A stretch of DNA of 64,000 nucleotides from Podarcis erhardii. Lineage: Eukaryota. Shown here piece by piece: positions 15,995 through 51,321 of the stretch. The position numbers were made by a program, and so were the translations under genes. Positions within the stretch are counted from its first letter, which is position 1, and every line of letters starts with the position of its first letter. The DNA is taken from the NCBI GenBank assembly GCA_964252035.1, contig OZ176200.1; one strand, written 5' to 3'. The notes beneath the pieces were generated by a model, which saw only the letters and a list, made by a program, of their open reading frames with translations, ran no database searches and was not told where the DNA came from.

Positions 15995-17020
15995 TACCAA
16001 ATATAATCAGTGCAAGCCAGCAGTAAGACACGACAAGATCGGGGACTCAGATCTGTAGTCAAATTTCACACTTGATAATAAGCATGTGTGTTCAAGAGTC
16101 GGAGGCATGAAATGCATAATCTGTATATGTTTGATTTTGGTCGAGGGCTCTGAAATGTTTTTACCAGGTTATAACTCTGCCCTCCCCCCAAAAGTCAATA
16201 ATACAAGGATGCAGTTTTGTGCACCATTACTTAGATGTGTAAGTCTTGAATAAATGTGATTAGGCATGGGCTGCACCTGTGGCAGCTGTTGCCCTACTTT
16301 TTACACTAGATCAATATAGTTGTTGCCATATGTAGCTTCCAGGGAGTACTTGCATCCCTACCCACGTGTGTGTGAACAATGAATCATATTCCATATACCC
16401 ACCCACTGAAGCTTGCTCCTACTAAAGCTCCGCAGGAGTGGAGCTTTCATTTCCATTGAAGTTAGTCTCTCTCCATCAGTTTTCCTTTGTGCTCTCCGGT
16501 CATCATTCCAGGCAGACATTAGCAGAGCCGTTTTGGTCAGCTTGAATCCCATTGTGCAAAGCTCTCCCCCCACCCCATCCCACTAGAGTTTTTTTCTGTG
16601 TGCTCACCTGCTTCCTTCCAGTCTCCAGGATATTAAATTCTCTCCCCCCCCCCCTTGGCTCCTGTGACATCTGTGCCAGAACTTTTCTTGCTGCCCTTAC
16701 CGTGGGAACATAAAAGATTGACCTTTCCTTGCTCAAGTGCAGCGATAACAATGAGTAATGAAAGGGGGCACGGGTGACGAAGATATCTGGGACATGGACT
16801 GCGGAGTTGCCTGCAGTGCAAGGTGTGTGTCAAGGATCCTGCTTCAAAGAAGCACCAAGAGCCCTCCTGGGACTCAGTAACAGAAGCAACAGCAGTGGCG
16901 AAAGATGAGGCGAGCTCAGGAACCCACGGAAACAGACTGAGAGAACCTGCTGAGGATTGCCCATTGAAATGACTTCTGATCCTGCACCTGGGAGATGAAA
17001 GAGACAGACAACAGCTGAAC

Positions 17021-17065
17021 ATGTGGACCATTGTAATAATAATCCTTTCCTCTTCGACACTAACT
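17021..17065 (+). CDS. SCTR: SCTR exon 1 (signal peptide [15 protein letters not shown])
   Basis: ATG, hydrophobic stretch and a perfect |gtaagt donor in phase 0, matching the exon 2 acceptor phase. Confidence 0.82.
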
Positions 17066-23000: not shown

Positions 23001-23559
23001 GGGTGGCTTTTGTATAAACTCCCTCTAATTCATGAACATATATTTTCAGTGAAAGAAGCTGACTTAAGCCCTTTGCAATCTAACCCTGATGACATAGACT
23101 TTTTTTGTCAACATGGAACTGGTGTAGTTCAGCTGCTTTCACTGAAATCAGTGGCTTGGGAGAGCCCCAAGGACCAGAGCCAGAGACCTGGAGGGGCTGC
23201 ATTTGATCCCCAGACCCGAGGTTCCCCACTCCTGCCCTAGTGAGTTCAAAATGAGCTCAGAAGGGTAGGCAAAACTTCAAAGGGCATTCTCGAATTTTAA
23301 CATGCTGCACTCTTAGGAATCCATCTATTTCTATAGCTGTAACTTGCCCATAAACCTTTATGTGGATGTTTTGTAGGATGTGTGTTTGGCTACTGACCAA
23401 TAAAAGAGCAAATGCTTTCTCAACTAGCAGGTCAGAGCCTTTATTTCATCATGTGAAATCATGAAAATTATGACAACAGAAGAACAACTCTGCAGCTTGG
23501 TCCTCTCCAAGGAAGAAGTGAATGCGACAACTGGAAATGAATCACTCCGGAGTTCAGGT

Positions 23560-23604: not shown

Positions 23605-26600
23605 CACGCGTAAGGAAAAATTAGGCTGATGTTGTAGCCATGGGTTCACTTGTGGGACTCATTTCCAAAACAGAGATTGCAGGCTAGGAAAGTCCCAGTC
23701 ATTAGAGATACCAGGATACGCATCAAGGATTCTGGAATTAAGAAGCAGCTGTTTCTTTTTGTCGTCATCACTTTTGATAGAAAACTAGACTAATTTCAGC
23801 CTCGTTTCGCTCACATCCTGCTTTTGTGCTTCTTGTATAATGTTTGAAAAAGGAAGCTCCAGTTTCAAAAATTTCAGTGTTGCATGGAATCAAATCTAGT
23901 GTGCTCAGAGAGTACAGTGGTACCTCAGGTTACATACGCTTCAGGTTACATACACTTCAGGTTACAGACTCTGTTAACCCAGAAATAGTGCTTCAGGTTA
24001 AGAACTTTGCTTCAGGATGAGAACAGAAATCGTGCTCTGGTGGCGCGGCGGCAGCAAGAGGCCCCATTAGCTAAAGTGTTGCTTCAGGTTAAGAACAGTT
24101 TCAGGTTAAGAACGGACCTCCAGAACGAATTAAGTGCTTAACCTGAGGTACCACTATATTGTATTTAGTAGCTAGACTAAAATATTTCCCCCTACTGTGG
24201 TGTCCACAGAGACCTGGGTGAGTGAATGTGGGTGTGCATGTTTCAGGTGGGATAGAGAATGGTTGACTTCTGGGAAAGAGATTTCAGAACAATGGCTGGT
24301 TGAAAGATAGTATTGATCTGTTTCCTCCTGGTCTTGATTAATGGCGTTTTATTAATATAGTCATTTCTTAAATAAACAACAGTGTCCTTGCCCTTCCTGT
24401 TTATCAGTGAGGTGAAGTCTGGTGATAGCCATCCAGTGGGTCTGTGGGAACCTTTGACATTAATGGCCCTGTCTGTCATCTTTCTGCCCCCCCCCCAACT
24501 ACGCTTTATCTCTATATGCCATTGGCATCACGGGGGTCCTCTGTTAGGAATGACAAATGCCTACTTCAGAAGATATGTATATGGGGCACAATAATATACA
24601 ATTGAACAAGATCACTTCTCCTCCCTTTTCCCAGCACACTCATCACAGTTTCCTTCTCAAATGCTCCTGGAACTGCCTGATTAGTGCCCACTTGGCTTAG
24701 TTAATGGATGCCTGTAGGCTGCCAATTCCCGTGGTGTCTGGGCTCTACATGAAGCAGACCCAAGTAGTCTAAAACAAAGTATGAGCATGTGAAGATGCAG
24801 AATAAATAAAAGGAGCCCTTTGTATTTTTGCCCCAGCTGGAAAACACTTGTAGTGTCGGGTGGTGGTGGTGGTGGCAGCAGAGGGAATGATACAAAGCGT
24901 TGCCATACATCAGGCATTGCTGCGTGATACATGGTAGGTTTTTCCCTTCCTTGTAGCACCTGCAGTGCCTAGATTATGCCAAGTGGGCTGCTCAGATTAG
25001 TTTGCAGTGAGTAGAGCTGCCATCTAGCCCATCCACATCATCTCAAGCACTGATGGCCAAAATTCTGGAGTTTGCTCAGAGAATTAGCCAAACTGATTTT
25101 CCAGCTAATCCATCAGAAGCAGGGAACCTCAATAGAGGAAAAGCTGCTCTGGACAGAAGTGGGGTGTGTGTGTGTGTGTGTGAAAGAGAGAAAAATGATT
25201 GCTAATGCCTGCACAAATCTGGGAGTTTTAAACTTTGAGTTTCCATCACAATTTGTGACAGCCCTAGAGAAGCCACAAGCTTTCCCAGAAGATAAGATAC
25301 TGATCATCTCCACTATAGGTGTAACAAATGGAAAATGAGGCATAGAAATGTACTTAAAGCAGGGTTGAGGAACCTCAGGCCTGGGGGTCAGAATGTGGTA
25401 ATTCCTCTTCTTCGTCTGGATGGCGTGAGGTATGTAACTTTTGTTGTTGTTCTTGACTCCTAGACAGATGCCTTGGAATGTGGGATAATATAACCTGCTG
25501 GCTGTCTTCTTCCATTGGGCAAACAGTTAGCGTTCCTTGCCCCAAAGCCTTCCAAATGGTAACTGGGAAAACAGGTAAAACTTAAAACATAACACTTCCA
25601 TAGGCACTGTCTGATGCCAGGCTTTCCTTGTACCCTGTCAAGGATTAAAGGCTGAGTCCTCTGTAACACAGGCTAGAATATGGTTTGTCATGTACTGTTT
25701 TTCTAGGGAAAGTAGAATCTTACCTAGAATCTAGGAGCTGCTTCTAGAAATGTCTGATGCTGCTATCTTAGCCTTGCACAGAGTTATTATTACTATTATT
25801 AATTAAATTTATATACCACCCTTCATCCAAGGATCACAAAGGAAAAAAAGAAAGAGGTAGAAACGTCACAGACCAAGAGCCCTTCTGGGGCTCGGCTTAA
25901 TTGATGTTGCTGGATGTCCCATAAGCTGATTGGCATCAGGAGGCAGAGCAGGTTTCTGCATTTGCTCCTTGCCTATTCCCCTGTGGGGCAATTGCTGTTC
26001 GCCCCAGGCAAGAAGGTGAACAGTAAATTCCTCTCAGGATCCCATTCGGACCAGAGTGTGAATTCTGTAAATGTTATGTTGGCCTTTTCTTTCTGTGACG
26101 TCAAGCAGAATTTGACAAGTGGCACAACCTATTTGGATTTTTTAAAATGTCATTCCTGGACGAATCCACCATCTATCATGGGCAACTGGTTGTGGTGGTT
26201 GTATACATAATCTCTGTATTGATAGGCAGTATGGCACTGAACACCAGCTGCTGGGGAGCCAGAATGGGAACAAAGGCTATTGCCTTCATCTTCTGCTTGT
26301 AGGGTTCCCAGAGGCACCTGGTTAGCCACTGTGTGCAGCAGGATGGTGATTCAGCTGGATCTGTAGCCTGAATCATCTTCTCATGTTCTTGTGCCACACA
26401 TGGAGAGAATTTGGACCAAGATCAGGGCTCAGATCCCAACAATGAAACTTTTTAGGCTTCCTATCTGCAAAATGAGAAAAATAATGGGCTGCCCGCAGAG
26501 TGCCTCTGAGGAAACTGCTTGTTCATATAGATATAGATATGGATCTATAAACACACAGATAGAAGTGGTAATTTCCCCTTCTGGTCCATGGGAATAAAAA

Positions 26601-29600
26601 CGAAGCATAATATAAACAAGGAAAGACGGCTCCTGCCTGATGTATTTGTTCTGTGGTGTTTTCATGGAGCCACAGTGAAGGGTTGCTTTGGATGGTGATT
26701 AAGATCAGTGATAAGCTAAAAACATTAAAACCCATGTAAACATTCTGCATATTTGGGTAATCTTCTCTAGGAAAAGAATGTTTTTAGCAGGCACCGAAAA
26801 GAGTACAGTCAATTGAAGGTGCCTGCCTGATGTTAATGGATGGGGAGTTCTAAATAGTGGGAGCTGCCACCCTAAAATACTGATTTGCTACAAATGGGTG
26901 TTATGTGGCACCTTTGCAGTGCCAGTTCTGCAGATTGCAGCAGTTGAGTGGACATATCTAGGGTAAGGTAAACTGTCTCTTAAGGGCTTTATATTCTAAT
27001 AGTAACACCTTGAACTTGACCCAGCAGCAAATTGGCAACCAGTGCAGATCTCTGAGCACAGGTGTTATATGCAGACAAGGATTCACTCCTGTCAGCATCA
27101 CGTTGCACCATTCTGCATTAACTGCAGCTTCTGGATCAAGCTCAAGGGAAGCCCCACATAGAGTGCATTGCAGTAGCCCAGTCTTGAAGTAACCAATGCA
27201 CGAACTACTGTGGCTACGTTTTCCTGGTGCAGGAACAGTTGTAGCAGTTGTACCAGTTGCAGCTGCAGAAAGGTGCTTCTAGTCACCAAGGTTACCTGAG
27301 CCTCCATTGACAATGCTGGATCCAGAAGACCCTTTCTGGGACTGGCAAGTGTGTATCTGGGCAGGGGGCGGGTGGAGTCTGACTCGGGAGAGGGGGGCAA
27401 ATGTTTGTGGGGACCTGTATCAGCCAGGAGGCAATAATCAGAGGCAGGTGGAGGCTGGTGGAGCACCAGATGGGTTGGAAGGAGAGGAGGAAGAGGCAGG
27501 TCAGGCAAGGGAAGGGCCCATCTGCTTCCCCACCCTCTCCTGTTTCCCAGAACCAGGAGGGAATTGAAAAGGGATGAGCAGAGGAAGATTCCATGCAAGC
27601 ACAGTCTCCAGCTGTGGGTATGCAGTCCGTCAGAGGAAGTTACATAAACTGGCAGAGGAAGAGTGGTCCTCTGTTGCTGCAGCTGCTCCCCAGAGCATGG
27701 AACTGTAGAGGTGACAGGAATCACTTAGCCACAGAACCCCTGTCTTGCCAGGATTCGAGCTCTTCTGGTTCTTCCTCGTCCACTTCACCACTGCATCTAA
27801 GGACTGCACAACCTCTCCCAATTCAGGTGTTATGATTCAGCACCTTAACAGCCTGCTTGAGAGGGTCTGGAAAAGGGACAACGGGGCAGCTTGTCGCCTG
27901 ATCGCTGGGAACACTGCAAAGCTGCTTTGGGCTACAACTCTCTCAACCCCGCTGGCTGGGGCTGAGGCGGATGGAAGTTGTTAGTTCCAGAGCAGCTGGA
28001 AGGACCAGGTCAGGGAAGACGGACAGTCTCTCCCACCAGCTGCCTGCAGATGGAAAACTCAGCCGCTAGAGGGAGCTGATAAAATTGAAACAACTCAGCT
28101 CTTGGCTGTTTTGATTTGTTATGCTTGCTCTGGGCTTTATTGCTTTAATGATGAAGGGTGATAAGAAAACCTTTAAATACATATTGATCAATCATGGCGT
28201 TGCCACAAGACATTTTGGTACCGGACGTGAACCACAAAATGACACGCCAACCTATCTGTCAGGGAAGAAGCAGGAAGAGTATGAGAAGCTGTGTATCAGA
28301 AACCAGGAAGGAATAAAAATCTATATGTGTTGTGTTCCTTGGAGGCCAGATATGCTGCCCCAGTGGATCCTGCTGCCCAAGGTGATCGACTCAACTTGGC
28401 CTTGATCAATCAGTTACATTTTAAACAACTTGAAGCCTAAGTATACGGTACTTAGAAAGGAGCCAGTCTCATTGAACATAGTGAGACTTACTTCCAGTTA
28501 ATATACTTGGGATTTAACTGCATACCATTTACCGTACTATACTATAGGTGACTGATGCTAGTGCTTTATGGTTCACAGCATGCCATAACAGCCACAGCGT
28601 AAGTGCAACCAGTTGTGTGATATATCTCCGCACTTGCAATCCTGAAATGATGTTTTCATTCTTGGGAACCATTTATTTTTATGGTGCCAACAATGAACTT
28701 TGTTCCTTGTAGAACAAAAAAGTAAAACAGAGACAGAAGCAGGAATGTCTGTGTTCAGACAGAGTCACTTAATTGCTCTTAAACATAACAGGATTAATGC
28801 ATCTCTTTGGAACATAATGAATATAGCTATTTTTGTCCATGGTTTAAGAACAGTAAACAATTTTCTGCTCTACTAATGGCTAATCTTGAAAATGCTTTGC
28901 TGAAACAAGCCAGCTTTATAAACTACAGTTTGAAATTGGCTTGTTTCAGCAAACCATAGTTAAGATGAACCACAATTTGCCCGGGTTCTGACATCACAGC
29001 AAGCTGCAGGTAATCTAAAAAGGAAGCAAAAACTTCCAGACTCCACCATGTGGTCTTGAATGTGTATATACTGTATAATAGTAGCTTTCACCAGTGCTAA
29101 TTGCAACTACTAACTGTATGACTTATTTTGTTTCTGTCTTTGCAAACCAAGGGTTTATATATCGTAACTGCACCAAGGATGGCTGGTCAGAAAAATATCC
29201 AAGACCCTATATTGCTTGTGGTTTAAATGTGGAAGAGATTAATGCTCCTATAGTTGCATGGCAGCGTAGGGTAAGTACAAATAATCAGTACAGTATCCTA
29301 TGGGCACTTTCAAACAGTTGCTGTTTGGGGGTGGAATTCAATACTGAAAATTCAGGTTGGGCAATTATAGTTGATTGGAAGGTCTTTCACAATAAACCTG
29401 CTTCCCCAAACATGACCTTTTGTGATAAGGAAAGTGAAGGAGAAATTCACTGGGCAATGTGGGATGACATTCGCCCTAAAGCAATGTCATCAAACAAACC
29501 AGGATGAATGCTCAACGGGCAGGTCATCGGGAAGCATCAGAAGTGGGGTGGAAGTGGTTTGAGCACACATTCCCTGTATTCCTGGGTATTTCTGCTTGTT

Positions 29601-32600
29601 TAGATTGACCTACTAAGCCACAGGTGGAAAACCCATTAGGATATCCTCTCACCAGACTCTTTTGAATCTGCATCATTTCCTGATAACTCTGGATGAGGTT
29701 CCTGCTGATATTCAAAAACTGGAGCCAGAGGAGAGGAGGAGAATCCAGTTCCATGGCTCTGTCTTCTGTTGTGCTTTTAAAACTGCTGCTTGTTTGATTT
29801 TAGCTGTTGTTGACTTTGCTTCATAGTTTGTTTTGTTTTTAGGCTGTACTTTTATTGTACTTGTTTTTAGATTGGCATAGAAAGGTGGGATATAGAAATA
29901 TCGTAAATACATATGTTTTCGTTCTGCAGCGGAAAAAGTGCGCTCAAGCCACCTATACCACACTTTTAGATATCTGCCTTCATCCTATGCGTTTATCTTC
30001 CGCCAGTGGCTTACTCAGGTTTGAAACACAGCACTAAAGAGCAGAGTAGGAAAAGGTGTTGCAAATAGCCCCACCTGGTGACAAAACATAGTATTATTCA
30101 GTCATAATACAAACAGAGCCTTTCTCCCTTCAAAAATTTGTTATAGGACAGCAGTCTGTTTTAAGTGACTGAAGCTCAGTTGGGACTAGTTATACACAAG
30201 CGCAGTTGACATGGAAGCAAAGCCTACTGCCAGGCCATTGATTTATGGTACACTAATACTGTACTTGTAGACAATGGTAAAACAATTTAAATATGTTGTC
30301 AACCACTTACAACCCTCTGTGGGGTTTTTGTGTCTCTAAATTTTAAATCTGGCCTAATTCTATCTGGGGCAGTGTTTTCTAATCACTCTGATTGCAGGCA
30401 AAACCAAATTAGTTCATGGTAGTGCTTTTAGAACAAATGATGGGACAGCATGTTCTGGAAAAAGACATGTTGTCACTCTTTTTGAGACAAGTGGGTTTCG
30501 TACACATTCACATCTCTGCCGGGACTGAGTGTACCTGGATGTTTCTTGACAGGTGTCTTACCTGAGGAAGTTGGAGATTGTGTACACCATCGGAACCAGC
30601 GCTTCTCTAGTGGCGCTGACAATTGCCTTGGGCATTCTGGGTTCTTTCAGGTGAAGAAGAATTATTCATTCCTTTTAAAATATTTGTTTCTACTTCCTGG
30701 TTAATCTGTGGAAAAAACCAACCCCCAAATGAATAGTGAAATAAAGTGTTATTTCAAAAGCCGTTCCATTGATCTTTCGTCAGATATTCATTCTGAAAGG
30801 GCTTCCTGTTTTGCACAGTAACAGTGGGGAAGTGTACATTCCGTTCAAACGTCAACAGGCAGAAGTGTATATTCAAGTGGGTAGAAGAAAAAACTTAAGT
30901 TTTAAAACTTAAGCTGTGGATTTGGGAAGATGATCTGTATGTTAGGTGGATATCCTGCTCATTGGATAGGTTTTTCAGGTGGATCTGACGAAGCCTGGCA
31001 AAGAAGCAGTGACTGCATCCCCCCTTTTATTAGTTATTTTGTCTTTCTATTAAAGCAGGGGTGGAACCCACAGTTGTCAAGATGCTATGGACTCCAGCTC
31101 CCATCAGCCCCAGCCAGCATGGCTAAGAGTCAGGGAGGTCTAGTCCGGAAACATCCAGAGGGTCACTAGTTCCTCAGCCTAGTGTTGTGGGAAAGATGAT
31201 CTTCAGTCCAAGAGTTCTCAGTTTTACCATCGATACGTCAGTTTTGCTTCACGATGCTATCAGATCAGGCAATGGTATTGGATGGTTGCAGAGTACTGAT
31301 GAGGTTCCTGTTGATTTGAATGACCATTGCTGAGTGGTACCACACTTTGCCCTATATTCAATCCTCAGTGACTTCAAGTGGCAAGACTGAGATCTTGGAG
31401 AAGCAGTTTCCTGTCAGAGCAGATGCATGGGCATAGCCAAGGGGGGCAAGGGGGTAGCTCCTCCCTTCTAGATCAAGTAAAACCATAGAAATACTTAACT
31501 AACTGACCAATCATGTCAGTTCTGCCTCCCTTCCCAAATCCTGACTACACCCATGAGCAGATGGGTTTGATGGATCAATATTCTGATTCTGCTTTAGATG
31601 GTGTAAGATCTGTTCATATGTCTGATAAAAAACCCAAGCAGTTCCTTGTTTAGAAACCTTCTTGATACTTTTCTCTTTGGGCCACAGACGGCTTCGCTGT
31701 ACGAGAAATTGCATCCACATGCAGCTCTTTGCATCGTTCATTTTGCGAGCTTTGGCAAACTTCATCAGAGATCCTGTCCTGTCTGAAGACACTGACGATA
31801 CCATCTACTGTGAGTTACACATGGTAAGGAAGAAGCCTATAAATATGGCCTACCATCCAGCTCATCACAGGTTGAAGAAAGGTGCCTGAGAATTAAATTC
31901 CCTTTCCATCCCTGTGAGCCATTTTGTCAGGGAAAATGGCAGACTTGAGGTGCAAGCTAATGTGAACTTCCCTGGTGCAGACCCATTGAAAACTGAGGAT
32001 TTACGTATGAGTAAAAAATGCTAAGGAGTGTGCTGTTCATCTGTTTGATTTTGTATGTATGGTCTGAACATAAATAATATATTGTTTATATATTGAGTTG
32101 TTCTTTGGTTTTATGAATACCACAACCACAAGGGGTGGATGTTCAAACTAAATGAATGAAATAATCACAAGGCCAAAGAAACCAAAGAGCAAAACGTGTT
32201 TAAACACAATTTGCATAACGTGTCGTGTGGCATCATGACACTTTACGAGGAAATTAATTGAAGTGCATTAATCAGCTCTTATAAAGATTTCACAAGGGAG
32301 TGAATGTGAACCTCTGTGATTGGCAGTAGGTTTGAAAATGGCAAAACTGTTCAGGACTTGAACAATAATAATTTGTTGCAGACTTGTTGATTTTAAAAGA
32401 TAACATTTTGAATCTTTTACAACATTTTTTTTAAAAAAAGAATACAGCATACATTTAAACATGGATGCTAGTGGTAGAAATAAAACAATCCAAACCAATA
32501 AATAAAATACATGGGTAACAGCGACTTATATCCCATGATATCATACTCAGAACAGACCCATTGATTTAAACAACTTCCATTGATTCCCTCAGGTCTATTC

Positions 32601-34802
32601 TGTGTGTGATTTAGTTGTGTATCACTCAAAATCTACAGTGAGAACGACAAAAAAGAGTGTAGTAATTGTAACAACCACAACCCGACTTTTACACAGGTGA
32701 AGCTCGGGAGCAGGACTGTGAAATGCCTAGGGAAGGGAGACAAAACACATGCTGTTTAGCTTCTGTTCCTCTTTCCTCAGGGTCGATGTAAGATTATCAT
32801 GGTCTTCATTAACTTCTGTATCATGGCTAACTACAGCTGGCTTCTTGTGGAAGGGCTTTATCTTCATACCTTGCTGGTGATGTCTTTCTTCTCCGAAAGA
32901 AAGTTCTTCTGGTGGTTTGTGGTTCTGGGATGGGGTAAGTACCAGTTGACACCAGTGGGGGAGCTGCAACAGAATGCTGCACAGTATTATCCCCCAGTGA
33001 CTCCATTTCAGTCCTTGCTCCGCTTCCCTTGCCTTCCTCACTTTTCTTTGCTTACCCTCATTTCGTGTGTCTCTCACTTCCTGTCTCACTCCATCTCTGG
33101 CACCACAACTTTAAAGCACAAGGCTTCCTGCAAAGAATCCTGGGAGCTGTAGCTACAATTCCTCTTAACAAGCTCCTGCTCCCAGAATCCTTTGGGGGAA
33201 GTCACGTCCTTTAAACGTGTGGTTGTGTACACAGCCTCTGGCTTCCTCTTCTTCATTCCCTGCTCTTGCTCCCTGCTTTATTCCTCTTTCTTTCGTCCTC
33301 TTTGCTACATTGCTTCTTTTGATGTTTCCCCTCCCTCTATTTCTCTTCTTGCCTCCCCACTCGCCGCTTTCTTTCTGTCTCTCGCTATCCTTTGCACAAC
33401 TTTGAGGTGTGTGATGGAGCAGGGTTTGCAGGGGCAGAATGTATTGCTTACACAGCTGAGGTAACAAAAACATTTCAAAGAAGCCAATAATATGCATGCA
33501 TAGTCCTCAGCAGCCAGGCTCTTTTTTGTTGTTGCTCCCTTTTGAGTTGGGGACAAATGAACTGAAACATGATGTGCTTGTGTATAGCTTCATATTCCCT
33601 GGGTATACAGTGGTACCTCGGGTTACATACGCTTCAGGTTACATACGCTTCAGGTTCCAGACTCCGCTAACCCAGAAATATTACCTCGGGTTAAGAACTT
33701 TGCTTCAGGATGAGAACAGAAATTGTGCAGTGGCAGTGCAGTGGCAGCAGGAGGCCCCATTAGCTAAAGTGGTGCTTCAGGTTAAGAACAGTTTCAGGTT
33801 AAGAACAGACCTCCAGAACGAATTAAGTTCTTAACTCAAGGTACCACTGTATCAGGGGAACTTCTCTTTGGTTTGTGGTTGTTCCCATTTTGCTTCAAAT
33901 TGATTGGCACAGATTGGCGTCAAAATATTCATTTAGCTGGTGATGGGATAGCTGCTTATTCCTGCTTTACAGGCCAGATAATCCTCAGGGTCCCTTCCAA
34001 CTCTACAGTGCTATGATTTCCTGTGCGTTGTATGATTAAGGGCTTTCCCACACTTCCGCTTAGTCTCTAGCTCTAAATTGGAACAAAGGGCAATCCGCAA
34101 AACACCTGAACTGCTATTTGCTCCAAGTGAGCTCTAAAGAGCGGTTTTTGCTGTGGGCAAAAGGAGTGGGAGAAGAGGAAGTATGGAAAAGCCTTAAGGG
34201 TTGATGGGTGGGTTCCTCTTTTTTTCTTTACTGCAGGCACTCCAACTTTCTTTGCAATTGCATGGGTCACGGCCAGACTATTACATGAAAATGTTGGGTA
34301 AGTTGTGTTTCCATTACATCTTTCCATGCTCTGTATTTATTAGTGTTGCCTCAGCTGTGTGCCCACAGAACCTTTGACAGCTGGTTTCAAATGGCTGCAA
34401 TCCTATTTTCTTGCAATATTTTGAAACACTGAGACAAGAAGAGAATAACAGTAGCAGTTCAGTTGCAATTAATACTGATCAAACCACTCCTAAAAATAGT
34501 GTGTACTGTATCCCATTATACAAGTGCCTGGCCAGTATAAAAAAATCTGCAGCTTCCTTGTGAAAACAGAATCCGTTCTTTTCTCTTTGCCATCTCCCAC
34601 TGCCCAGACATATATTGTCTCAAGCAATCCCCATCATTCTATGCTGGGGAACTCAGGCCAGTTAATCTGGTTTCAAACCATGTTTATGTCTTTTGTTCTG
34701 TTCCAAGAACCACTTGTAGCCTTCATTTGTCATCTAGAACTCATACTTTTATTATTATCAATAAAAGAAAATAGGCAGAGTTTTAATCTGAACATCACAT
34801 CA

Positions 34803-34842
<40 letters not shown>

Positions 34843-37800
34843 GCATTTATGAAAGACTCTCACTGTTAGGAGCTCTCTGTATTAAAATGGCAAGAAGGGA
34901 AGCAGCTGTATCTGCAGTTATTGTGATAATAAATTCCAGAAGGGCAGCTGTTCTTCGCCTGTTGCATCAAAAACAACACAGATTATTGTGGAACCTTAAA
35001 CACTTATTTTTTAAAAAACGTATTGTTGCATATGCGTTAATTTGATTATGATCATTTCCCATCCAGCAGGGGGAGTTGGGTTGTTTGTGAAGTGCTGTTG
35101 TTTTCTCGTTGCAAAGACCGCGCTAAACGAAAACACAATATTATCTTGAAAAACAAGGAAGTGTTTTCGGAACCTCAAGTCAAAGGATAAGAAGCTGACT
35201 CAGCTGCATTGCTGTGAGGCCTCTGGACTTTGACGTTTGACTGGGATTGGAATACGGTATCAGAAGTAAAAATCTTTCAGGCCAGCAGCCATATATACCT
35301 GTGTTATAGTCAAGGCTTTTTCCCCCAGCCAGAACTTGCCAGAACTCCATTCCAGCACCTCTCAGGCGGGCGCCATTGCCATTCTAAGGGAATAAGGGAG
35401 GTGATCACAGTCCCTCTTTTTCAAGAAAAGTAGTCCTGGTTATAGTGAGAGCCAGGTGAAGCTGTAGAGGCTGCTCTATGAGACTCTATTAACCTCAGTC
35501 TGTCCTCAGCCAGCCCTCACCTCAGCCCTGGACTTCTTACTTAGCCTGGGGCCTTCCAGAACCACAAGCCTGTTTTGGCCCAGCAGTATCCTCCTGCTGC
35601 ACATCTGATATCCTATGTGAGGTTAGCTGTGTGGCAGGTAAAGGAGCAGCTGGGCAGAAAGGCTGCCTGCAGTCACCACAGGGCTATGCAAGCCCAGACA
35701 ATCAGCTGATCCTCAGGGCTTGCATGCATAGTGTTGTGTCTTTGCCTGCACAGTTTGATTTCAAAATGCACAGGCAAAAATGGATCATCTGACACTATTG
35801 GGACTTCCCTTACCAGGTTGAGGGTGATCAAGGTCTAGATGGATCCAGCTCCTCCCCACCCCTAGACCAGGGTACACTTCCTGATCCTGGGGGGGCTTTG
35901 GACTACAACTCCCATCATGCTGTGACCATTGGCAAGGCTGGACGGGGCTGATGGGAGTGGCGAAGAAGGGCATCAAGTTGAAAAAGGATGGCGACTAGGG
36001 CATTGCCAATTTGTTGAGCTCCTCTGAATCATGACTCACAGTAAAATGCAAATGTATTATTCTGCTTTTCCTGCTTGTTTTCTGCACACTTGAGTATTCT
36101 AATAGTTTTATCCATCCGGTATAATTTGAAAGGCCAGGATGGATGCCAGCTCCTATCTGCTGGGCATGTTGCCTTGCGATATTTTGCCTTTGAAGACAAA
36201 TATTGCTAACATGATGCTCGCTGGCATTTGTTGACCTGAAAAGCATAATGAATGAATTTTGCTATCTTACAGATGCTGGGATACTCATCTTACATATGCC
36301 CGGTGGCTCATTCAAGGCCCTGTGGTAGTTTCTATTGTTGTAAGTCTGAATTACAATGCCTCTTCTATTTTTGTACCAAATGTTATTTGTCTGTGACCGT
36401 AATAAACAAATTCATGCTATTGCTATAAGTCCATTTCACAGCCGATTTCTGAGATGAAGATCGAACTGAAGAGAGCAAATTTGATGCGTGTCTTTCAAAT
36501 ATGTGAATGTCAATGCCAGCTTTTCATTCTCTTTGCAGATCAATTTCGTTTTGTTTGTTAATATTGTGAGGATTCTAATGAGCAAACTTAGATGGCCAGA
36601 TGGAAGGAACAAGGATTCCAGTCAATACAAGTAAGACAGCTTAAAACAAAAAACAAAAAACCCCTCAGCCTCACACATAAGTACAACAGCAAGAGATACC
36701 TGCGCACAGATGTTTTACCTGTTTGCCTGCAAATATATGCCAAGATATGTATCACCCAGATAAACTTGTCTGATTAGCTGCCTCAAGGACACCCACCCCA
36801 ATAAAATGCCTCCAGGTCTGCTTGTGCTTCTTTTGGAAAGATCTTATTCCCATCTATAGTAGCAGCAACAGAGCACAAATCTGGATGCAAAGCCCTGAGC
36901 GTAGTGTGATGAAAGCTGATGGAGAAAATCCCCATTCCCTCTCTTGTAATACAGTCATACCTTGGTAGTTGAATGCCTTGGTACTCGTCTGTTTTGGCTC
37001 CCGAATGCTGCAAACCCAGAAGTGAGTGTTCTAGTTTGCGGACGTTCTTTGGAAACTGAACGTGCGATGAGGCTTCTGCTGTTTCCAATTGGCTGCAGGA
37101 TCTTCCTGCAGCCAATCGGAAGCTGCACCTTGGTTTCTGAATGTTTTGGAAGTCAAACAGACTTCTGGAACAGATTCCGTTTGACTTCTGAGATACCACT
37201 GTACTTCGGTTAAGGGCCATCCCGTGAAACTGAAGAGGTAGGCGATTCAGGAGAGAGAAAATGAAGCACTTCTTCACACAGCACAGAGTTTAAACTATGG
37301 AATTCACTTCAAGAAGATGCGACGATGATAGCCACTAACTTAGGGGGCTTAGATAGATTCATGGAGGATGTCCATGGTGCCTGCTGCCAATATGTAAAAA
37401 AACAGAAGCTGCAGGAACTTCTGGGACCTAGACCCTGTGACCTGTTGTCTGGCGCTAGTGATATTGCTGATCTTTAAAGGCAGGCCTGCACTGCCCCTGA
37501 AACTTCCCATTGCATTTTCTTCTGGAGGGGATAGTTCTGCCTACAAACTGAGATCAATATGAAGTTCACCCTCTTTAGGCCGTTTCTTCATTTCTGTTTT
37601 GTTCTGTTATCTCTGTCTTTACTCCTAGGAGACTCGCTAAATCCACACTCATCCTCATCCCTCTCTTTGGAGTCCATTACATCATATTTGCTTTCTTCCC
37701 TTTTGATACCACGAACGGCACCATGGAGATTCAAGCTCTGTTTGAAAAAGCCATTGGATCTTTCCAGGTAATCTGTTCCTTGGAAGGTCTTCATCATCTT

Positions 37801-40224
37801 CAGACGAAAGAAGCCCCACCCATCTTTTGCAATCAAAACAGGCTGTGTTGGCAAACCTCCTTAATGTTTTCCAGGCCCCCGGGTGTCTAGAGCAAACAGG
37901 ATGCAAAGAGGTAACTGGAATTCTTAGGTAACTAGGACAGGGGTGCCCAGGGCTTATTGGCTAATGCTTTTTTTTTTTTTTTGGCCCAGGTGCCACATTA
38001 ACACTTGGCAAATCTTTTGTAGGTTGCATGCCAGTGGTGAATATGGTTGCACCACTCTCTCTCATGCATACTTTTACATACACAGAGAGAGCGCAAACAA
38101 ACACAAGCAGACACAGACATTGGCACACAGCCCCCTCCTCCCAGACCTGGGCAGATCAACTGAGGAGGACAGGTTATTACCTTCTTTCCACTGGTCAAGT
38201 GGTTGATTAGATGACTGGGGAGGGAACATTTCTTTATCCCTAACAGGGTGTTGGTCTATGCCCATCCCAGTACTGTCGATTCTCCCCCACCTTTCACCAA
38301 CATAATTGTTGGGTCTTGGGCACTTCATAAATTGGGAGAAGGCAGGTGAGTCTCTAACCCAAACGGGTTTAGCCATGCCTGCTTTAGGAATAAAGTCCTC
38401 CCACAAGGACAAAGGTAGTTAACAGTCTTTCTCTCTTTTTTTTAATGGCACAAGGAATGAAATACACATTCAGGTTGGGCATGATGTAGCCCTCCTCTGC
38501 ATTGGGTTTCTGATTAGACCAAAACCCCAGAGATCCAGTATTTCTCATGGCACCTTGCAGGACCCTCTTTGTAACAAGGACCTGTTCCATCTTGCCCCAT
38601 GCCTCACTTTCTTCTCAGAATGCCCTTGTTGCAAGAAAGACCTGCACGAGTTTGAAAACACTGCAACTACTAAAATATCCAGTTGGTCCAGCAAAGTATA
38701 TCATTTCTCCTAGTGTAACAATCCAATCCTAACCCATGGATCTTTGCCACTGGAGGGGCTTAACATATGGCACAGGTGACAGGGACCATCACTTCTGCTG
38801 CTACTTGCTGTGGTAGCAGAAAGCATAGCACTTGAGACGCTATGCATGGCAGCGTTCGCACAGGTGGTTAACCAGCATGGGCCCCCGAAATGGGGTGTTA
38901 TGGGGTAGGGATAGAGCAGAGCTGACCATGGATCACTGGTTCCAAAGCTGCTCCAGCTTTCTAATCCTGGAGCTCGTGGGAGTGATATGGTAGAAATCCC
39001 ACCACCACCTTCTGCCCTGTCCAGGGGCACCAGCTTCAGGGGGCCGAGCCCTCTGGGGGGGGGCTATGTGTGTGTGATTCCCCCCCTCCCCACTGCACCT
39101 CTCACCCCAGGCTAGTTTGAGGTGGCAGGACTTGTGTGCTGGTCGTGGGGGTTAAACAAGAGGCAAGGTCCAAGTCCAGTCCGTGGTCGATGAAGCAATA
39201 TGAAGGCAGTCTGTAAAAGTTGAAGCTGGGTGTAGGGCAGGGTTCAAGGCAGGAACTGACAACCACCAACATTGCTCCCGCAACTTGGGACTGGGACTGA
39301 CTGGCTTTTATCTGCCCCGAGGCATAGGGTGGCCCCGATCCTCAGGTGACTCGCTTCTCCTGGCCTGGAGGCGAGCACTCCTCCTGTGGGAACTTAGTTC
39401 CTTCCGCCTCTCTGCCCTGAGCCTCTGCAGCTCAGGAGAGGCTGGAGGGTTACTGGACCCAGAGGCAACCCCAGCTTCCTCTGACAGGGCTGAGAGTGGA
39501 GCACCTACTGGCAATGGGTCCTCCATCGCCTCAGGAGCCAGAGCAGACTCAGCTGGTGCCTGCACCTGAGGATCCAGCACAGGTGAGGACCCTTCAGGCT
39601 CATGCCACAACCCTGGCTCAGCTGGTTCTGGAGGCAGGGGATTCTGTGCAGGCTGGGATTCTTCAGGTTCAGCATCTGAATCCGAATTCCAGGCCATCAC
39701 ACCTTGGGATGCAGTAGTAGACAGACCACTCTTCTCTGGCCCTGGTTTAGATTGCTCTGTAAGTCACTCTGTCTTTTCTTCACATCTGGCAGCACACTGC
39801 GTGCCTGGAAGGTCTACATGAGCTTTTTCTTGCTTCTATATTTATTCTGGAGTGCCAACCTGCCACTTCTAGTTGTATATCTCATGACTGACACGGGCCT
39901 CTTTTGTTTTCAGGGCTTTGCTGTGGCTGTGCTTTACTGTTTTCTTAATGGAGAGGTGAGTTTCCCATAGATTGTAATGTACTAAAAATCAAAATATGTG
40001 TTCTTCTTATTTGCATGTTGACCCCATAATGTTTTGTTTAGGTCCAACAGGAGATCCACAGAAAATGGCGGCAGTGGCACTTAAGAAAACACATTCATTC
40101 ACAGAAGCATCACAGCTGCACATTTCCAAATGATGTCAGTGGATTCACCCAGGTGCTGCAGCTGATGAAGCCCAGCCCCCAGGAGGAAAGGGGACCTTCT
40201 GCCCCACATCTGAGTCAAATGTGA
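17021..40224 (+). CDS. SCTR: Secretin receptor (class B1 GPCR), complete 13-exon CDS, 457 aa; join(17021-17065,23431-23557,25464-25574,29152-29270,30553-30650,31688-31823,32781-32934,34237-34297,36273-36339,36539-36630,37629-37767,39914-39955,40042-40224)
   Basis: Total 1374 nt, open frame, all introns GT-AG. Signal peptide; 7 ECD cysteines; class B motifs [61 protein letters not shown]. Exon sizes and phases follow the SCTR/VIPR pattern, and it lies between CFAP221 and TMEM37 as in human. Confidence 0.95.
18591..18954 (+). mobile_element. Sauria SINE, full length, young
   Basis: tRNA-like head GGTGGCGCTGTGG...GGTTCGAATCC, tail CCTTTACCTTT; perfect 14-bp TSD TTAACCCTCCCATT (18577-18590, 18955-18968); many CpGs intact. 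Confidence 0.93.
19340..19990 (-). mobile_element. L1-clade LINE 3' fragment (frameshifted ORF2 C-terminus and 3'UTR)
   Basis: CWKC...HMF-C...FW zinc-knuckle-like motif, then [10 protein letters not shown]...P...W...W in a second frame. Confidence 0.8.
20105..20250 (-). mobile_element. SINE: tRNA-Lys(CTT)-derived head plus CR1 3' tail
   Basis: Head matches recalled vertebrate tRNA-Lys-CTT at 62/73 by hand count; tail ATTCCTGCATTGCAGGGGGTTG...CCCTTCCAATTCTACAATTCT. Confidence 0.82.
20746..20990 (-). mobile_element. hAT MITE (family A), 245 bp
   Basis: Reverse homolog of 2551-2796; 8-bp TSD CCCAATGT (20738-20745, 20991-20998). Confidence 0.9.
22130..22660 (-). mobile_element. L1-clade LINE 3' fragment (second family)
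   Basis: [34 protein letters not shown], followed by a 3'UTR and A-rich end. Confidence 0.8.
23431..23557 (+). CDS. SCTR: SCTR exon 2 (127 nt)
   Basis: [42 protein letters not shown]; two ECD Cys; ctagcag| acceptor and |gtaaaa donor. Confidence 0.88.
23565..23600 (+). repeat. (TG)18 beginning at +8 of SCTR intron 2
   Basis: Direct count. Confidence 0.95.
23915..24156 (+). mobile_element. Tigger-type MITE (family T1)
   Basis: TA-CAGTGGTACCTCAGG...CCTGAGGTACCACTA-TA; internal CTTCAGGTTA subrepeats. Confidence 0.88.
25464..25574 (+). CDS. SCTR: SCTR exon 3 (111 nt)
   Basis: (D)[36 protein letters not shown]; the in-frame acceptor is cctag| at 25463. Confidence 0.93.
26296..26393 (+). mobile_element. 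CR1-like 3' end fragment (GTTCTT tail type)
   Basis: GGCACCTGGTTAGCCACTGTG...CAGGATG...TCTTCTCATGTTCTT; reverse homolog at 53676-53860. Confidence 0.55.
26950..27850 (-). mobile_element. L2-clade LINE RT/C-terminal fragments, interrupted
   Basis: [20 protein letters not shown]...IQKLQLMQN and [17 protein letters not shown] resemble L2 ORF2 motifs. Confidence 0.78.
29152..29270 (+). CDS. SCTR: SCTR exon 4 (119 nt)
   Basis: (G)[39 protein letters not shown]; AGG|gtaagt donor. Confidence 0.93.
30553..30650 (+). CDS. SCTR: SCTR exon 5 (TM1, 98 nt)
   Basis: [32 protein letters not shown](R). Confidence 0.95.
31426..31555. mobile_element. hAT MITE (family D), 130 bp
   Basis: TIRs CATGGGCATAGCCA / TGACTACACCCATG; perfect 8-bp TSD AGCAGATG (31418-31425, 31556-31563). 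Confidence 0.85.
31688..31823 (+). CDS. SCTR: SCTR exon 6 (ICL1-TM2-ECL1, 136 nt)
   Basis: [45 protein letters not shown]. Confidence 0.96.
32781..32934 (+). CDS. SCTR: SCTR exon 7 (TM3-ICL2-TM4, 154 nt)
   Basis: [51 protein letters not shown](G). Confidence 0.97.
33099..33236. mobile_element. Palindromic MITE, PIF/Harbinger-like, partial
   Basis: TTTAAAGCAC...CAAAGAATCCTGGGA / CCCAGAATCCTTTGGGG...TTTAAA...GTACACAGCC. Confidence 0.6.
33608..33849 (+). mobile_element. Tigger-type MITE (family T1)
   Basis: TA-CAGTGGTACCTCGGG...AAGGTACCACTG-TA. Confidence 0.9.
34237..34297 (+). CDS. SCTR: SCTR exon 8 (61 nt)
   Basis: (G)[19 protein letters not shown](G); ctgcag| acceptor and |gtaagt donor. 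Confidence 0.94.
34806..34841 (+). repeat. (CAG)12 microsatellite in SCTR intron 8
   Basis: Direct count. Confidence 0.95.
35311..35438 (+). mobile_element. hAT MITE (family B), 128 bp
   Basis: Perfect 8-bp TSD GTTATAGT (35303-35310, 35439-35446). Confidence 0.85.
36273..36339 (+). CDS. SCTR: SCTR exon 9 (ECL2-TM5, 67 nt)
   Basis: [22 protein letters not shown]; cttacag| acceptor and |gtaagt donor. Confidence 0.94.
36539..36630 (+). CDS. SCTR: SCTR exon 10 (92 nt)
   Basis: [30 protein letters not shown](K). Confidence 0.96.
36952..37201 (+). mobile_element. Tigger-type MITE (family T2)
   Basis: TA TSD; CAGTCATACCTTGG...GATACCACTG; internal palindrome TTCCAATTGGCTGCAGGATCTTCCTGCAGCCAATCGGAA. 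Confidence 0.85.
37629..37767 (+). CDS. SCTR: SCTR exon 11 (TM6-ECL3-TM7, 139 nt)
   Basis: [46 protein letters not shown]. Confidence 0.97.
39135..39701 (-). mobile_element. Solo LTR (567 bp, probably Gypsy/ERV type) in SCTR intron 11
   Basis: TG...CA termini with 8-bp imperfect TIR TGTGATGG / CCAGCACA; 5-bp flanks ACTTG / CCTTG (one mismatch); TATA-like GATAAAAG at 39305-39312. Confidence 0.78.
39914..39955 (+). CDS. SCTR: SCTR exon 12 (42 nt)
   Basis: [14 protein letters not shown]; the canonical 42-nt class B exon. Confidence 0.97.
40042..40224 (+). CDS. SCTR: SCTR exon 13 coding part (helix 8 and C-tail, TGA at 40222-40224)
   Basis: [60 protein letters not shown]. Confidence 0.93.
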
Positions 40225-47525: not shown

Positions 47526-48098
47526 TTAATTTTTCCTCATTCTATTCCACGGAAATGTGATGTTGTTAAGATGAAGTCCACTGATTCCATTCAGGAAGAA
47601 AAGGAAGGCAGAAATGAATTCACACCAATAGGTTAGTGTGAAACCCGTGAGAGTGATGTGGTCCCTCAGAAGGAATAAGAAGCTCAAAACTCCAGTGAAT
47701 GAGAGCAGGAACGAGAGAAGAACGAGGATCGATCCCATCGACCACTTCTTCCTGGAGTTGACGTCTTCACAGACTTGGGAGACCATGAGAAGTTCCAGGC
47801 CAAAGATTGCGACGACAACAGCAAAAGACACCAGACTTCTTGCAAAAGTCATTCCCGCGTTGATCCCTCGAATGTTGGCCAACGTGAGATCAGTGGCACA
47901 TTTCAGGGCACTATTGTTCCCGACTGTGCAGAAGTGCCACAGTCCAAAGAGCTTTCCCTTGGCAAAAAGCCAGTGCCCATCGCACACAGCAATGGAGGAC
48001 AGGACAATGGCTATCGCAACGCAGAGGATAATCAGGCTCCTGATGAACATCTCAAAAAACGATCTTGTCCGTCTTCTACGAGTGAGTAACCACTGGGC
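47526..48098 (-). CDS. TMEM37: TMEM37 exon 2 coding part
   Basis: Four hydrophobic segments, GLWHFC motif; 573 nt open frame. Confidence 0.97.
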   Translation of the reverse strand, partial: AQWLLTRRRRTRSFFEMFIRSLIILCVAIAIVLSSIAVCDGHWLFAKGKLFGLWHFCTVGNNSALKCATDLTLANIRGINAGMTFARSLVSFAVVVAIFGLELLMVSQVCEDVNSRKKWSMGSILVLLSFLLSFTGVLSFLFLLRDHITLTGFTLTYWCEFISAFLFFLNGISGLHLNNITFPWNRMRKN

Positions 48099-48615: not shown

Positions 48616-51321
48616 AGGGAGAGAGAGAGAGATGCTACATTTATGCTGTTAAGAGTCTGGAAAGAAAGTAAATTATCTGCCATATTTCATTCATAAGAAA
48701 AAGAAAAGTGAAGCAGGCTACACTTAGTCACATCTTTCTTTGGTCTTGTAGGCAATGCCCTGGCTGACTACTATTCAGAGAAGCAACAAGGCACCATATA
48801 CTAGCAAACAGAGTTTTTATTTCCCACTAGCTGGACCATAAAGAAGGCTGATTGCTGAATAATTGATGCTTTTGAATTATGGTGCTGGAGGAGACTCTTG
48901 AGAGTCCCATGGACTGCAAGAAGATCAAACGCATCCATTCTTAAGGAAATCAGCCCTGAGTGCTCACTGGAAGGACAGATCATGAAGCTGAGACTCCAAT
49001 ACTTTGGCCATCTCATGAGAAGAGAAGACTCCCTGGAAAAGACCCTGATGTTGGGAAAGATGGAGGGCACAAGGAGAAGGGGACAACAGAGGACGAGATG
49101 GTTGGGCCGTGTTCTCGAAGCTACAAACATGAGTCTGACCAAACTGCGGGAGGCAGTGGAAGACAGGAGTGCCTGGCGTGCTCTGGTCCATGGGGTCACA
49201 AAGAGTCGGACACGACTAAATGACTACACAACAACAACAAAGCAGCACAGACCTGTTCTTGGCTGAAGCAGGAAATCCTCCCACAATCGGAGCATTTTTT
49301 TAAAATTGTGTGTGTAGGAACAAGTCTATTGCGCATGTGGCTTGCCCCACTTTACGAACTTGCCTCCCTCGCTGCCACTGCAAGCTTGCCTGCCCAGGCC
49401 GCCCGCCCAAGGCTGCATTGAAACTTCCCCAGCTTAACATTTCGATCTGTCTTGCCATGGCTTGTTCTGTGCAGAAGTGTTGGCTGTCATTGACGCCGCC
49501 TCCAGAGTTTTAAAAGTGAGAGATTAAAATGTTCTACTTCTCCCTATACACACTTTTCTAGTAATGAATATTGCAGATCATCGAGTTCTGATTTCCTGTG
49601 TGTTGGAGGAAAGGACCCTGACTATTTTGATGTCTCCATCAAGATAACCTTTATTGCCTGAGGAGCTGTCTCATGGGTTTTCCAGGGCCATCATTTTATA
49701 ATGTTGTGAAATGATTTCACAGAATTGTAGAGTTGGAAGGACCCTGAGGATCATCTATTCCAACCCCCTGCAATGCAGGAATATACAGCTGTCCCATACA
49801 GAGATTGAACCTGCAACCTTGGCATAAACAGCACCATGCTCTAACCAACTGAGCTATCCAGGCTGCTTTGGATATGGGCACAACATAAGGAGCAAAGGAG
49901 TATCATTGCATTGTACAGCTGGAAGGAACCTCAAGGGTAATCTAGTCCAACCTCCTGCAATGCAGGAATCTTTTGCCTAATGTGGGTGCTCGAACCCACA
50001 ACCCTGCGATTTAGGGTCTCATACTCTACCGAGTGAGCTATTGAGCTATCCCAGGCAGAGAGGTATCAAAGAGAAAACCAGGACTTCTTCTCTGATCAGC
50101 ACAATGAATGTTTTCAACTTGGGGGGAAAGATGGGAAATTCAGTCAAGCAGAGCTTGCGTTGATGATGAGACATCCAGCAGAGGAATAATAAATGCTGGA
50201 TAGGAGTTGCTTAAAGGTTAAGTGTTTTTAAATGCTTGATTTTATTATTTAATAATTTTAAGGGTGTGTGTGTGTACACATGCATAGATTTATATGATTT
50301 TGCTGGAAACTGCTGAAATGGGAATTTGAAGAAAAGGCTGTAGCTCAGTGGTTGGAGCATCCACTCTCCATACAGAAGGTGATGGGTTCTAATCCCAGCA
50401 TCTCCAGGGCAAGGAGAAACCTCTGTCTGAAATCCTGGAGAGCAGCTGCCAATGCAGAGAGGATTCAGTTAGAAGGACCAATGGTCAGACTCAGTATAAA
50501 GCAACTCTCTATGATGCCATCCTGCTCCAATTTCTCAGGAGCTTAGTTCACAAGCTAAAAACATTCGCTGTGAGCATATCTTCCTTGTAACATCCTATAT
50601 CTCTTCTTTTCTTAATTGCAGCCCCTGTGGTTCATTATATATCTATCTATCTCTATATATTAAAATATGGCTCTTGCACAAAATATCCTCACAAGATCCA
50701 CTGAGCGAGAGTCAGTTTTGCTGAAACATCAGTAATAATGTCCGGGGAGGAACAGAGCCACTGATCTTTGTAAACAACTCATTGCATTCCAGGAGAGAAG
50801 GGAGGAAATGGAGCAAGTTCAGAATGTTATTTGAGTCCTTAAGTTGACAAAAGCTTACACAGTGAAACCCCAACGGACCATAGCTCTGCCTCTGGAGCAG
50901 AATCGTTTTGTACACATGATGTTAAAAGGGGTTTCATGGCGGAAGAAAGGCAGGGCAGAAATGTCAGAAAGCAAACAAGTTTTTAAAAAGTCCCCACCCC
51001 TGAAGTATGCAGCTAGAAAGCACAGACTTTGCATATTCAACGGGACAACAACCCTGTGAGGTAGGTTTGGCTGTGAGGCAGCGACTGGCCCAAGGACACC
51101 CAGTGAGCTTTATGTCGAGCGGGGAGGATTCAAACCCTAACCCCCACGCTCTAACTACTGTGTCTCATCAGATTTCCCTCATTGGATGGTGAATGTAAAT
51201 CTAGAAAAGCAGTCCAGACATTCAAAGTCAGATGTAAATGCCAGACCCTCCAAGTGTCTCTATTTTCCAGAGACAGCCCCAGATTTTCGTTGTCCCCGAG
51301 AGGGGGCAATGACAATAAAGA

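Follow-up and report, generated by a model that had tools for sequence, protein, structure and literature searches.

The 64,000-nucleotide stretch of Podarcis erhardii DNA analysed here (contig OZ176200.1 of assembly GCA_964252035.1; hereafter, the window) carries the gene for the secretin receptor, SCTR, whose peptide-binding pocket is the subject of this report. Three-frame reading and inspection of splice sites resolved the gene into 13 exons on the plus strand, from an ATG at 17021 to a stop codon at 40224 (Table 1), with GT-AG borders at all introns and without an internal stop. The segment between 30553 and 37767, to which the initial annotation had assigned a secretin receptor with a rewired pocket, corresponds to exons 5 to 11 and spans transmembrane helix (TM) 1 to TM7. 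The intact open reading frame (ORF) claimed there was recovered, whereas its proposed length of 457 amino acids (aa) reflects one of two splice variants. Exon 2 starts at a tandem (NAGNAG) acceptor, CTAG/CAG/G at 23425-23430, of which the first site (TAG) yields a product of 458 aa and the second (CAG) one of 457 aa, the two isoforms differing by a single glutamine after the signal peptide. The annotated SCTR isoforms of Podarcis likewise form a 458/457-aa pair, and the window protein differs from that of P. raffonei at 6 of 458 residues and from that of P. muralis at 8. Exact mapping onto the genomic loci of Zootoca, Crotalus, Anolis sagrei and Elgaria recovered the same 13-exon structure in all four, with exons 2-13 of identical length, while exon 1 measures 45 nt in Zootoca and Crotalus, 54 nt in Anolis and 66 nt in Elgaria. 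As to the non-coding parts of the gene, introns 2 and 7 each house a copy of an interspersed repeat of ∼248 bp with the look of a short interspersed element (SINE), a third copy of which lies upstream of exon 1 (∼90% identity among the three). Intron 8 contains a (CAG)n microsatellite that reads as a polyglutamine run within a 173-aa chance ORF, and intron 11 a 130-aa ORF on the minus strand.

The window gene is an intact SCTR ortholog of the class B1 (secretin-family) type of G-protein-coupled receptor (GPCR). Its exons for TM1, TM3 and TM6-7 found their best PDB matches in human secretin receptor chains, and Pfam PF00002 (7tm_2) was detected both on exons of the window (E = 6e-18 and 2.5e-7) and on the P. 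raffonei SCTR (E = 5.9e-82). The N-terminal hormone-receptor domain that marks class B1 was found on the near-identical Podarcis protein (HRM, E = 1.3e-20), and the extracellular-domain cysteines 24, 37, 61, 70, 84, 102 and 118 line up with the cysteine columns of the orthologs. An unconstrained maximum-likelihood (ML) tree of 27 named SCTRs and representatives of the paralogs (VIPR1, PAC1, GHRHR-type and others) grouped the window protein with Zootoca and placed squamates within the SCTR clade, nested among sauropsids, with the paralogs outside and geckos as an intermediate sister group of the remaining squamates (support: tetrapod SCTR clade 98-100%, squamates 100%, non-gekkotan squamates 100%). 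Besides, the gene downstream on the minus strand is TMEM37, represented by a single open exon of 174 aa that covers nearly the whole protein (Pfam PF15108, E = 1.9e-82); TMEM37 adjoins SCTR in human as well. One exon might nevertheless invite the reading that the gene is a mis-named paralog whose pocket has always been different: that for extracellular loop (ECL) 2 and TM5 has changed so much that even its top PDB matches have E values of about 0.5-0.7, with VPAC1 and SCTR equally poor. Yet the PDB matches of the other exons, the position in the tree and the TMEM37 neighbour leave this explanation hardly any probability, and we excluded it.

What sets the receptor apart is which of its residues have changed. 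When human SCTR sequences taken from PDB chains (6WZG/6WI9, 7D3S) were aligned to the window exons, the TM1 sequence SYLLKLKVMYTVGYSSS of the human protein was found to differ from that of the lizard, and so were the aligned segments of TM3 and TM6-7. In Wootten numbers, the lizard carries K1.40E, Y1.47T, K2.67R, A2.69P, F3.36I, Q3.37N, W5.36R, R5.40Q, L7.39A and L7.43K relative to human, and in ECL2 the motif CWDIN has become CWDTH together with a one-residue deletion. All of these exchanges had been listed in the initial annotation, and codon positions and the alignments with human SCTR bear out every one of them. Additional changes are H2.52Q, S2.63A, F2.72S, Y3.38F, F7.40L and, in ECL3, Glu to Phe; moreover, the stalk of the lizard receptor is 5 aa longer than in human and its ECL3 4 aa longer, the latter being common to non-mammals. 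The signalling motifs, by contrast, were correctly described as retained, from H2.50 through R2.60, N3.43, E3.50, W4.50, N5.50, T6.42, P6.47, G6.50, Q7.49, G7.50 and Y7.57 to the NGEVQ of helix 8. In a first species set, the activation and coupling motifs were invariant or nearly so in squamates and 21 outgroups, with at most one of 11 sequences departing, at 5.50. The receptor has thereby retained all that folding, activation and G-protein coupling demand of class B1, namely the cysteines of the extracellular domain, the disulfide between TM3 and ECL2, the polar network at the centre, the hinge PxxG and the motifs of TM7 and helix 8, and the overall architecture of HRM plus 7tm_2 is that of the human receptor.

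The human receptor's contacts with secretin are known from cryo-electron microscopy combined with molecular dynamics (PMC7435274). There, E7.42 contacts His1 and Ser2 of the hormone; His1 is further contacted by Q3.37, Y3.44 and R5.40, and Asp3 by R2.60, R5.40 and Y1.43. The Phe6/Leu10/Leu13 face is met by L7.43, K1.40, L1.39, L1.36 and H1.33, whereas Arg14, Arg18 and Arg21 are met by D2.68 and three ECL1 aspartates; loop contacts involve D287, I288 and N289 in ECL2 as well as E363 and M366 in ECL3 (all PMC7435274). Judged against this map, the lizard has replaced K1.40, Q3.37, I288, N289, R5.40, E363 and L7.43, and hence lacks the full set of secretin contacts expected of an SCTR ortholog, while Y1.43, R2.60, D2.68, L2.71, Y3.44, D287, E7.42 and the acidic ECL1 cluster are still in place. 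As regards charge, the basic residues R5.40 and K1.40 were lost and K7.43 and R5.36 gained, and among acidic residues E1.40 was gained and the ECL3 glutamate lost. Judging from the residues involved, these changes look like a coordinated relocation rather than an erosion.

How widespread this pocket is was assessed by tabulating the pocket positions of named SCTRs across jawed vertebrates together with the members of the squamate sequence clusters. The sample comprised 25 non-gekkotan squamates (five lacertids besides the window, the amphisbaenian Rhineura, the teiid Salvator, the cordylid Hemicordylus, two Anolis, Pogona, Elgaria, Varanus and twelve snakes, from boas and pythons to colubroids), five geckos from four families (Eublepharis, Gekko, Paroedura, Heteronotia and Euleptes) as well as tuatara, four turtles, gharial, four birds, six mammals, four amphibians, coelacanth and sturgeon. 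The derived pocket was present in 25 of 25 non-gekkotan squamates, and was absent from the five geckos and from all other vertebrates of this main sample. Its states are E1.40, T1.47 (S in snakes), Q2.52, P2.69, I/V/L3.36, N3.37, an ECL2 of the form CWD(T/M)HL-TY, R5.36 (L in snakes and Rhineura), Q5.40, FPFD in ECL3, A7.39 and K7.43 (R in Hemicordylus). Departures are isolated: Hemicordylus has N2.52, V7.39 and the ECL2 sequence CWDIQR-THI, Varanus has S3.37, and position 3.36 is T in Rhineura and F in Salvator. The substitutions, which the initial annotation had described for a single lizard, are therefore not a feature of that species, K2.67R alone among those listed being specific to lacertids. 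Nor are they ordinary for sauropsids at the residue level. Tuatara, turtles, gharial and birds show the ancestral pocket states, as do mammals, amphibians, coelacanth and sturgeon; the SCTRs of chicken, other archosaurs and turtles, although sauropsid orthologs, are ancestral at every listed pocket position. A change private to this genome, or an assembly artefact, was rejected, given the derived states in 25 non-gekkotan squamates and five assemblies.

Geckos are a living intermediate between the ancestral and the rebuilt pocket. With the other squamates they share the ECL2 deletion, a stalk longer by 5 residues, a longer ECL1, Y3.38F, S2.63A, F2.72S and the change of CWPSS to CWLSS, yet they retain the ancestral Y1.47, A2.69, F3.36, W5.36, R5.40 and L7.43 and have states of their own at 1.40 (N) and 3.37 (H). 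Outside tetrapods, the SCTR of the bowfin (Amia; R1.40, Q2.52, H3.37, S5.40) and an SCTR-like protein of the skate (Leucoraja; H1.47, Y5.36, Q5.40) depart from the tetrapod pocket too, but through substitutions of their own, and neither has the squamate combination of T1.47, N3.37, R5.36, Q5.40 and K7.43. Comparison of these sequences suggests that remodelling of the SCTR pocket may have occurred more than once in vertebrates. We found no description of a remodelled SCTR pocket in squamates in the literature searched.

The claim that change is concentrated on the extracellular pocket held up when all conserved sites were considered. Among sites conserved in 22 non-squamates (at most one exception), a site was counted as shifted if the ancestral residue survives in no more than one non-gekkotan squamate. 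By this measure, 13 of 62 sites were shifted in the extracellular half (plus loops), as opposed to 2 of 82 in the intracellular half (odds ratio 10.6, Fisher p = 5e-4); the first species set had given 14/65 and 2/83, respectively (p = 2.5e-4). Seven sites were shifted in all squamates. Geckos showed 9 extracellular and 3 intracellular shifts, compared with 2 and 3 in mammals, 2 and 1 in birds, 1 and 2 in turtles and 3 and 1 in amphibians, so that mammals had no extracellular bias despite their long stem branch (0.24), nor did birds, turtles or amphibians. On the species topology, the squamate stem measured 0.279 and the non-gekkotan stem 0.131 substitutions per site, and the branches leading from the ancestral sauropsid to the window SCTR added up to 0.60, as against about 0.15 to tuatara, turtle or gharial. 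The squamate stem lasted roughly 50 million years, the non-gekkotan stem 10-20 and the crown about 180-190 million years; with these dates, both stems evolved several-fold faster than the crown.

From a site-by-site comparison of the living sequences, the remodelling would have proceeded in two bursts. The first, on the squamate stem, would have produced Y3.38F, F2.72S, the deletion in ECL2 and the lengthening of stalk and ECL1, with positions 1.40 and 3.37 starting to change. A second, on the stem of non-gekkotan squamates, would then have added Y1.47T, F3.36I/V, W5.36R, R5.40Q, L7.39A and L7.43K. The paired changes A2.69P and H2.52Q probably belong to this second burst as well, because geckos keep the ancestral residue (5/5 at 2.69, 4/5 at 2.52).

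Once established, the derived states have been held by purifying selection while lizards and snakes radiated. Within the crown group (window, Zootoca, Elgaria, Anolis and Crotalus), pairwise estimates by the Nei-Gojobori method gave ratios of non-synonymous to synonymous rates (dN/dS, or omega) of 0.16-0.24 among these five non-gekkotan squamates, far from the value of about 1 expected of plain decay; between window and Zootoca, 16 non-synonymous and 26 synonymous differences correspond to 0.17. By region, omega was 0.11-0.15 in the extracellular half, 0.09-0.24 in the intracellular half and 0.19-0.30 in the extracellular domain. The rebuilt pocket is thus as constrained as the G-protein side. 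Besides, sctr transcripts have been reported from the ventromedial hypothalamus of Anolis (bioRxiv 10.1101/2021.01.15.426859). Neutral divergence, the onset of pseudogenisation, an oddity of one genome or an error in its assembly could appeal to the overall pace of squamate SCTR, which is about four times that of other sauropsid SCTRs, but we give this group of explanations next to no credence: the window and 25 other species have an intact ORF, dN/dS is low, codon-level states match in five independent genome assemblies, and the shifts are strongly biased to the pocket, with birds, turtles, the crocodilian and tuatara remaining ancestral. The initial annotation had favoured a functional receptor over a pseudogene, and in this it was right.

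It had also put forward a ligand-independent or heterodimer role, and of its three options this one has come out as the least supported. A receptor of this kind, be it constitutive or the partner in a heterodimer, would have lost agonist binding, with only the TM core and the intracellular face still mattering, which would suit the loss of several canonical peptide contacts and the perfectly kept intracellular motifs. However, purifying selection acts on the extracellular half with the same strength as on the intracellular one, which argues against decay and against a pocket-free role alike; the derived residues of the pocket hardly vary among 25 species, and the extracellular domain has kept its cysteines and HRM fold (omega 0.2-0.3). 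Positions 2.50 and 6.42, which are sites of activating mutations in PTH1R, are wild type, too. All in all, a reduced or ligand-independent role appears improbable.

We consider it very likely that the squamate gene encodes a functional SCTR with an intact signalling core, whose pocket was anciently rebuilt across the clade in two steps and then kept, with a change in how the agonist is recognised. The replaced residues, about a dozen in TM1, TM3, TM7, ECL2, ECL3 and the upper ends of TM2 and TM5, would line the site for the hormone's N-terminal half, and basic charge would have been relocated from 5.40 and 1.40 to 7.43 and 5.36. Partners that appear to have been kept are E7.42 for the amino terminus of the peptide, R2.60 for Asp3, and D2.68 with the acidic ECL1 cluster for the basic mid-helix. 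Since the anchors for the amino terminus and the basic helix are in place while the readers of positions 1-3 and 6-13 have changed, we infer that the agonist resembles secretin and that its N-terminal half is non-canonical. Such a receptor would signal canonically while reading an agonist whose N-terminal residues are unlike those of canonical secretin. Going by sequence, most squamates probably recognise a hormone N-terminus that differs from that of ordinary secretin.

As to the identity of this agonist, a co-diverged product of the squamate secretin gene (SCT) is the option we rank highest, at about even chances. The variation at 3.37 and 5.40 in the SCTR-like proteins of bowfin and skate, taken together with fish secretins that are reported to be strongly diverged and poorly conserved in the secretin region (PMC12714231), provides a precedent for a ligand and its receptor drifting together. 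In chicken, secretin and SCT-LP, both encoded by a single SCT gene, reportedly activate SCTR (Wang et al. 2012, as cited in PMC12714231). Somewhat less favoured is the case in which early squamates lost or silenced SCT and their receptor became tuned to another endogenous peptide, non-canonical or new. The changed residues are the readers of N-termini of the His1/Asp3/Phe6 type, the derived pocket matches no paralog, the two-step pattern would fit a relaxation followed by recapture, and SCT was not found in the 2010 draft genome of Anolis (PMC2880984). The Xenopus draft was reported to lack SCT as well (PMC2880984), yet the gene was later cloned there, which makes absence from a draft weak evidence, and the retained E7.42, R2.60, Y1.43, D2.68 and acidic ECL1 cluster favour a secretin-like peptide. 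The possibility of a different ligand for this receptor is therefore a lesser one in our eyes. As for the switch to a different ligand envisaged in the initial annotation, canonical VIP, PACAP or GHRH is disfavoured as the new ligand, because the receptors for these peptides keep the residues replaced here: VIPR1, PAC1 and GHRHR-type paralogs share subfamily, fold and activation motifs with the lizard protein but retain K1.40, Y1.47, F3.36, Q/H3.37, W5.36, K/R5.40 and L7.43. Convergence on a VIP/PACAP receptor pocket was rejected on the same grounds. A bolder proposal is that non-gekkotan squamates do without canonical secretin at SCTR and that, about 180-200 million years ago, this receptor acquired as its new partner a peptide breaking the His-Ser-Asp...Phe6 rule, either a radically diverged product of the secretin gene or a new hormone; we put it forward tentatively and would lean against it for now. 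A list of enteroendocrine markers in python does not include SCT, which we did not count as evidence.

Several points weigh against an ancient, clade-wide rebuilding for altered agonist recognition. Constraint on the stem branches may possibly have been relaxed for an interval and then renewed. The failure to detect SCT in the Anolis draft, the only statement on squamate secretin that turned up in the literature, fits gene loss or poor assembly, and no pharmacology of any squamate SCTR was found in the literature searched. The division into extracellular and intracellular halves is our own, made by Wootten numbers. Most of the orthologs are predictions of annotation pipelines, with confirmation at the DNA level in five species, and Scincoidea are represented by a single cordylid in a sample that includes neither skinks nor Dibamidae.

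Table 1. Features of the 64,000-nucleotide window, with the codons of selected pocket residues
Feature	Position	Strand	Length	Basis and details
SCTR exon 1, start codon and signal peptide	17021..17065	+	45 nt	sole upstream match to MW...hydrophobic, followed by GT
SCTR exon 2, N-terminal helix of extracellular domain, tandem TAG/CAG acceptor	23428..23557	+	130 nt	length as in the loci of four relatives
SCTR exon 3, hormone-receptor domain	25464..25574	+	111 nt	Pfam HRM on near-identical Podarcis protein
SCTR exon 4, end of extracellular domain and stalk	29152..29270	+	119 nt	alignment; squamate stalk 5 residues longer than in other vertebrates
SCTR exon 5, TM1 with E1.40 and T1.47	30553..30650	+	98 nt	PDB alignment to human SCTR; codon positions E143 (1.40) 30574-76, T150 (1.47) 30595-97
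SCTR exon 6, TM2 and ECL1	31688..31823	+	136 nt	H2.50, R2.60, acidic ECL1 cluster kept; Q2.52, R2.67, P2.69 derived; codons R195 (2.67) 31767-69, P197 (2.69) 31773-75
SCTR exon 7, TM3 and intracellular loop (ICL) 2	32781..32934	+	154 nt	I3.36, N3.37, F3.38 derived; N3.43, Y3.44, E3.50, W4.50 kept; Pfam 7tm_2; codons I223/N224 (3.36/3.37) 32808-13
SCTR exon 8, TM4	34237..34297	+	61 nt	reading frame and splice sites
SCTR exon 9, ECL2 and top of TM5	36273..36339	+	67 nt	1-aa deletion, R5.36, Q5.40; codons R295 (5.36) 36301-03, Q299 (5.40) 36313-15
SCTR exon 10, TM5 (N5.50) and ICL3	36539..36630	+	92 nt	N5.50 present
SCTR exon 11, TM6, ECL3 and TM7	37629..37767	+	139 nt	T6.42, PLFG, E7.42 kept; FPFD, A7.39, L7.40, K7.43 derived; Pfam 7tm_2; codons A374 (7.39) 37735-37, K378 (7.43) 37747-49
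SCTR exon 12, end of TM7 (G7.50, Y7.57) and start of helix 8	39914..39955	+	42 nt	codon positions
SCTR exon 13, helix 8 (VQQE...), C-terminal tail and stop codon	40042..40224	+	183 nt	reading frame and splice sites
SINE-like repeat, upstream of SCTR exon 1	15751..15997	-	∼248 bp	
SINE-like repeat, SCTR intron 2	23912..24159	+	∼248 bp	
SINE-like repeat, SCTR intron 7	33606..33852	+	∼248 bp	
(CAG)n microsatellite, SCTR intron 8	34803..34841			
ORF, SCTR intron 11	39308..39700	-	130 aa	
TMEM37, open exon	47529..48050	-	174 aa	Pfam PF15108
CpG-island-like stretch	51800..53000			GC 0.62, CpG observed/expected 0.88
GC-rich patch	12300..13000			GC 0.60, CpG observed/expected 0.61
ORF, probable retrotransposon fragment	2776..3180	-		reverse-transcriptase look
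ORF, probable retrotransposon fragment	48898..49266	+		reverse-transcriptase look

Beyond SCTR, the window offers a few further observations. The first exon of TMEM37 is expected farther along the minus strand, toward higher coordinates, and the CpG-island-like stretch found in that direction, which has long GC-rich ORFs on both strands, is probably the promoter and first exon of TMEM37 or else the promoter of another gene. GC content is also raised, though less so, in a patch ∼4 kb upstream of SCTR exon 1. Two further ORFs resemble the C-terminal portion of a reverse transcriptase of the long interspersed element (LINE) type (with motifs such as FKYLKGCH and LQYFGHLMRR), and probably are fragments of retrotransposons.

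Class B1 receptors, which are major drug targets, are the textbook case of a conserved orthosteric pocket that reads a conserved peptide N-terminus. In SCTR of the clade concerned here, i.e. thousands of species comprising most living lizards and all snakes, about a dozen pocket residues were replaced together while the signalling core was kept, and the outcome was held throughout the lizard and snake radiation. The ordered series from turtle and tuatara through gecko and cordylid to lacertid and snake may thus illustrate how the pair of a peptide and its GPCR can shift in specificity without losing function. The finding predicts an unusual secretin-like hormone in squamates, and activity of mammalian or chicken secretin in the physiology of lizards or snakes, e.g. 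in studies of python digestion, should not be taken for granted.

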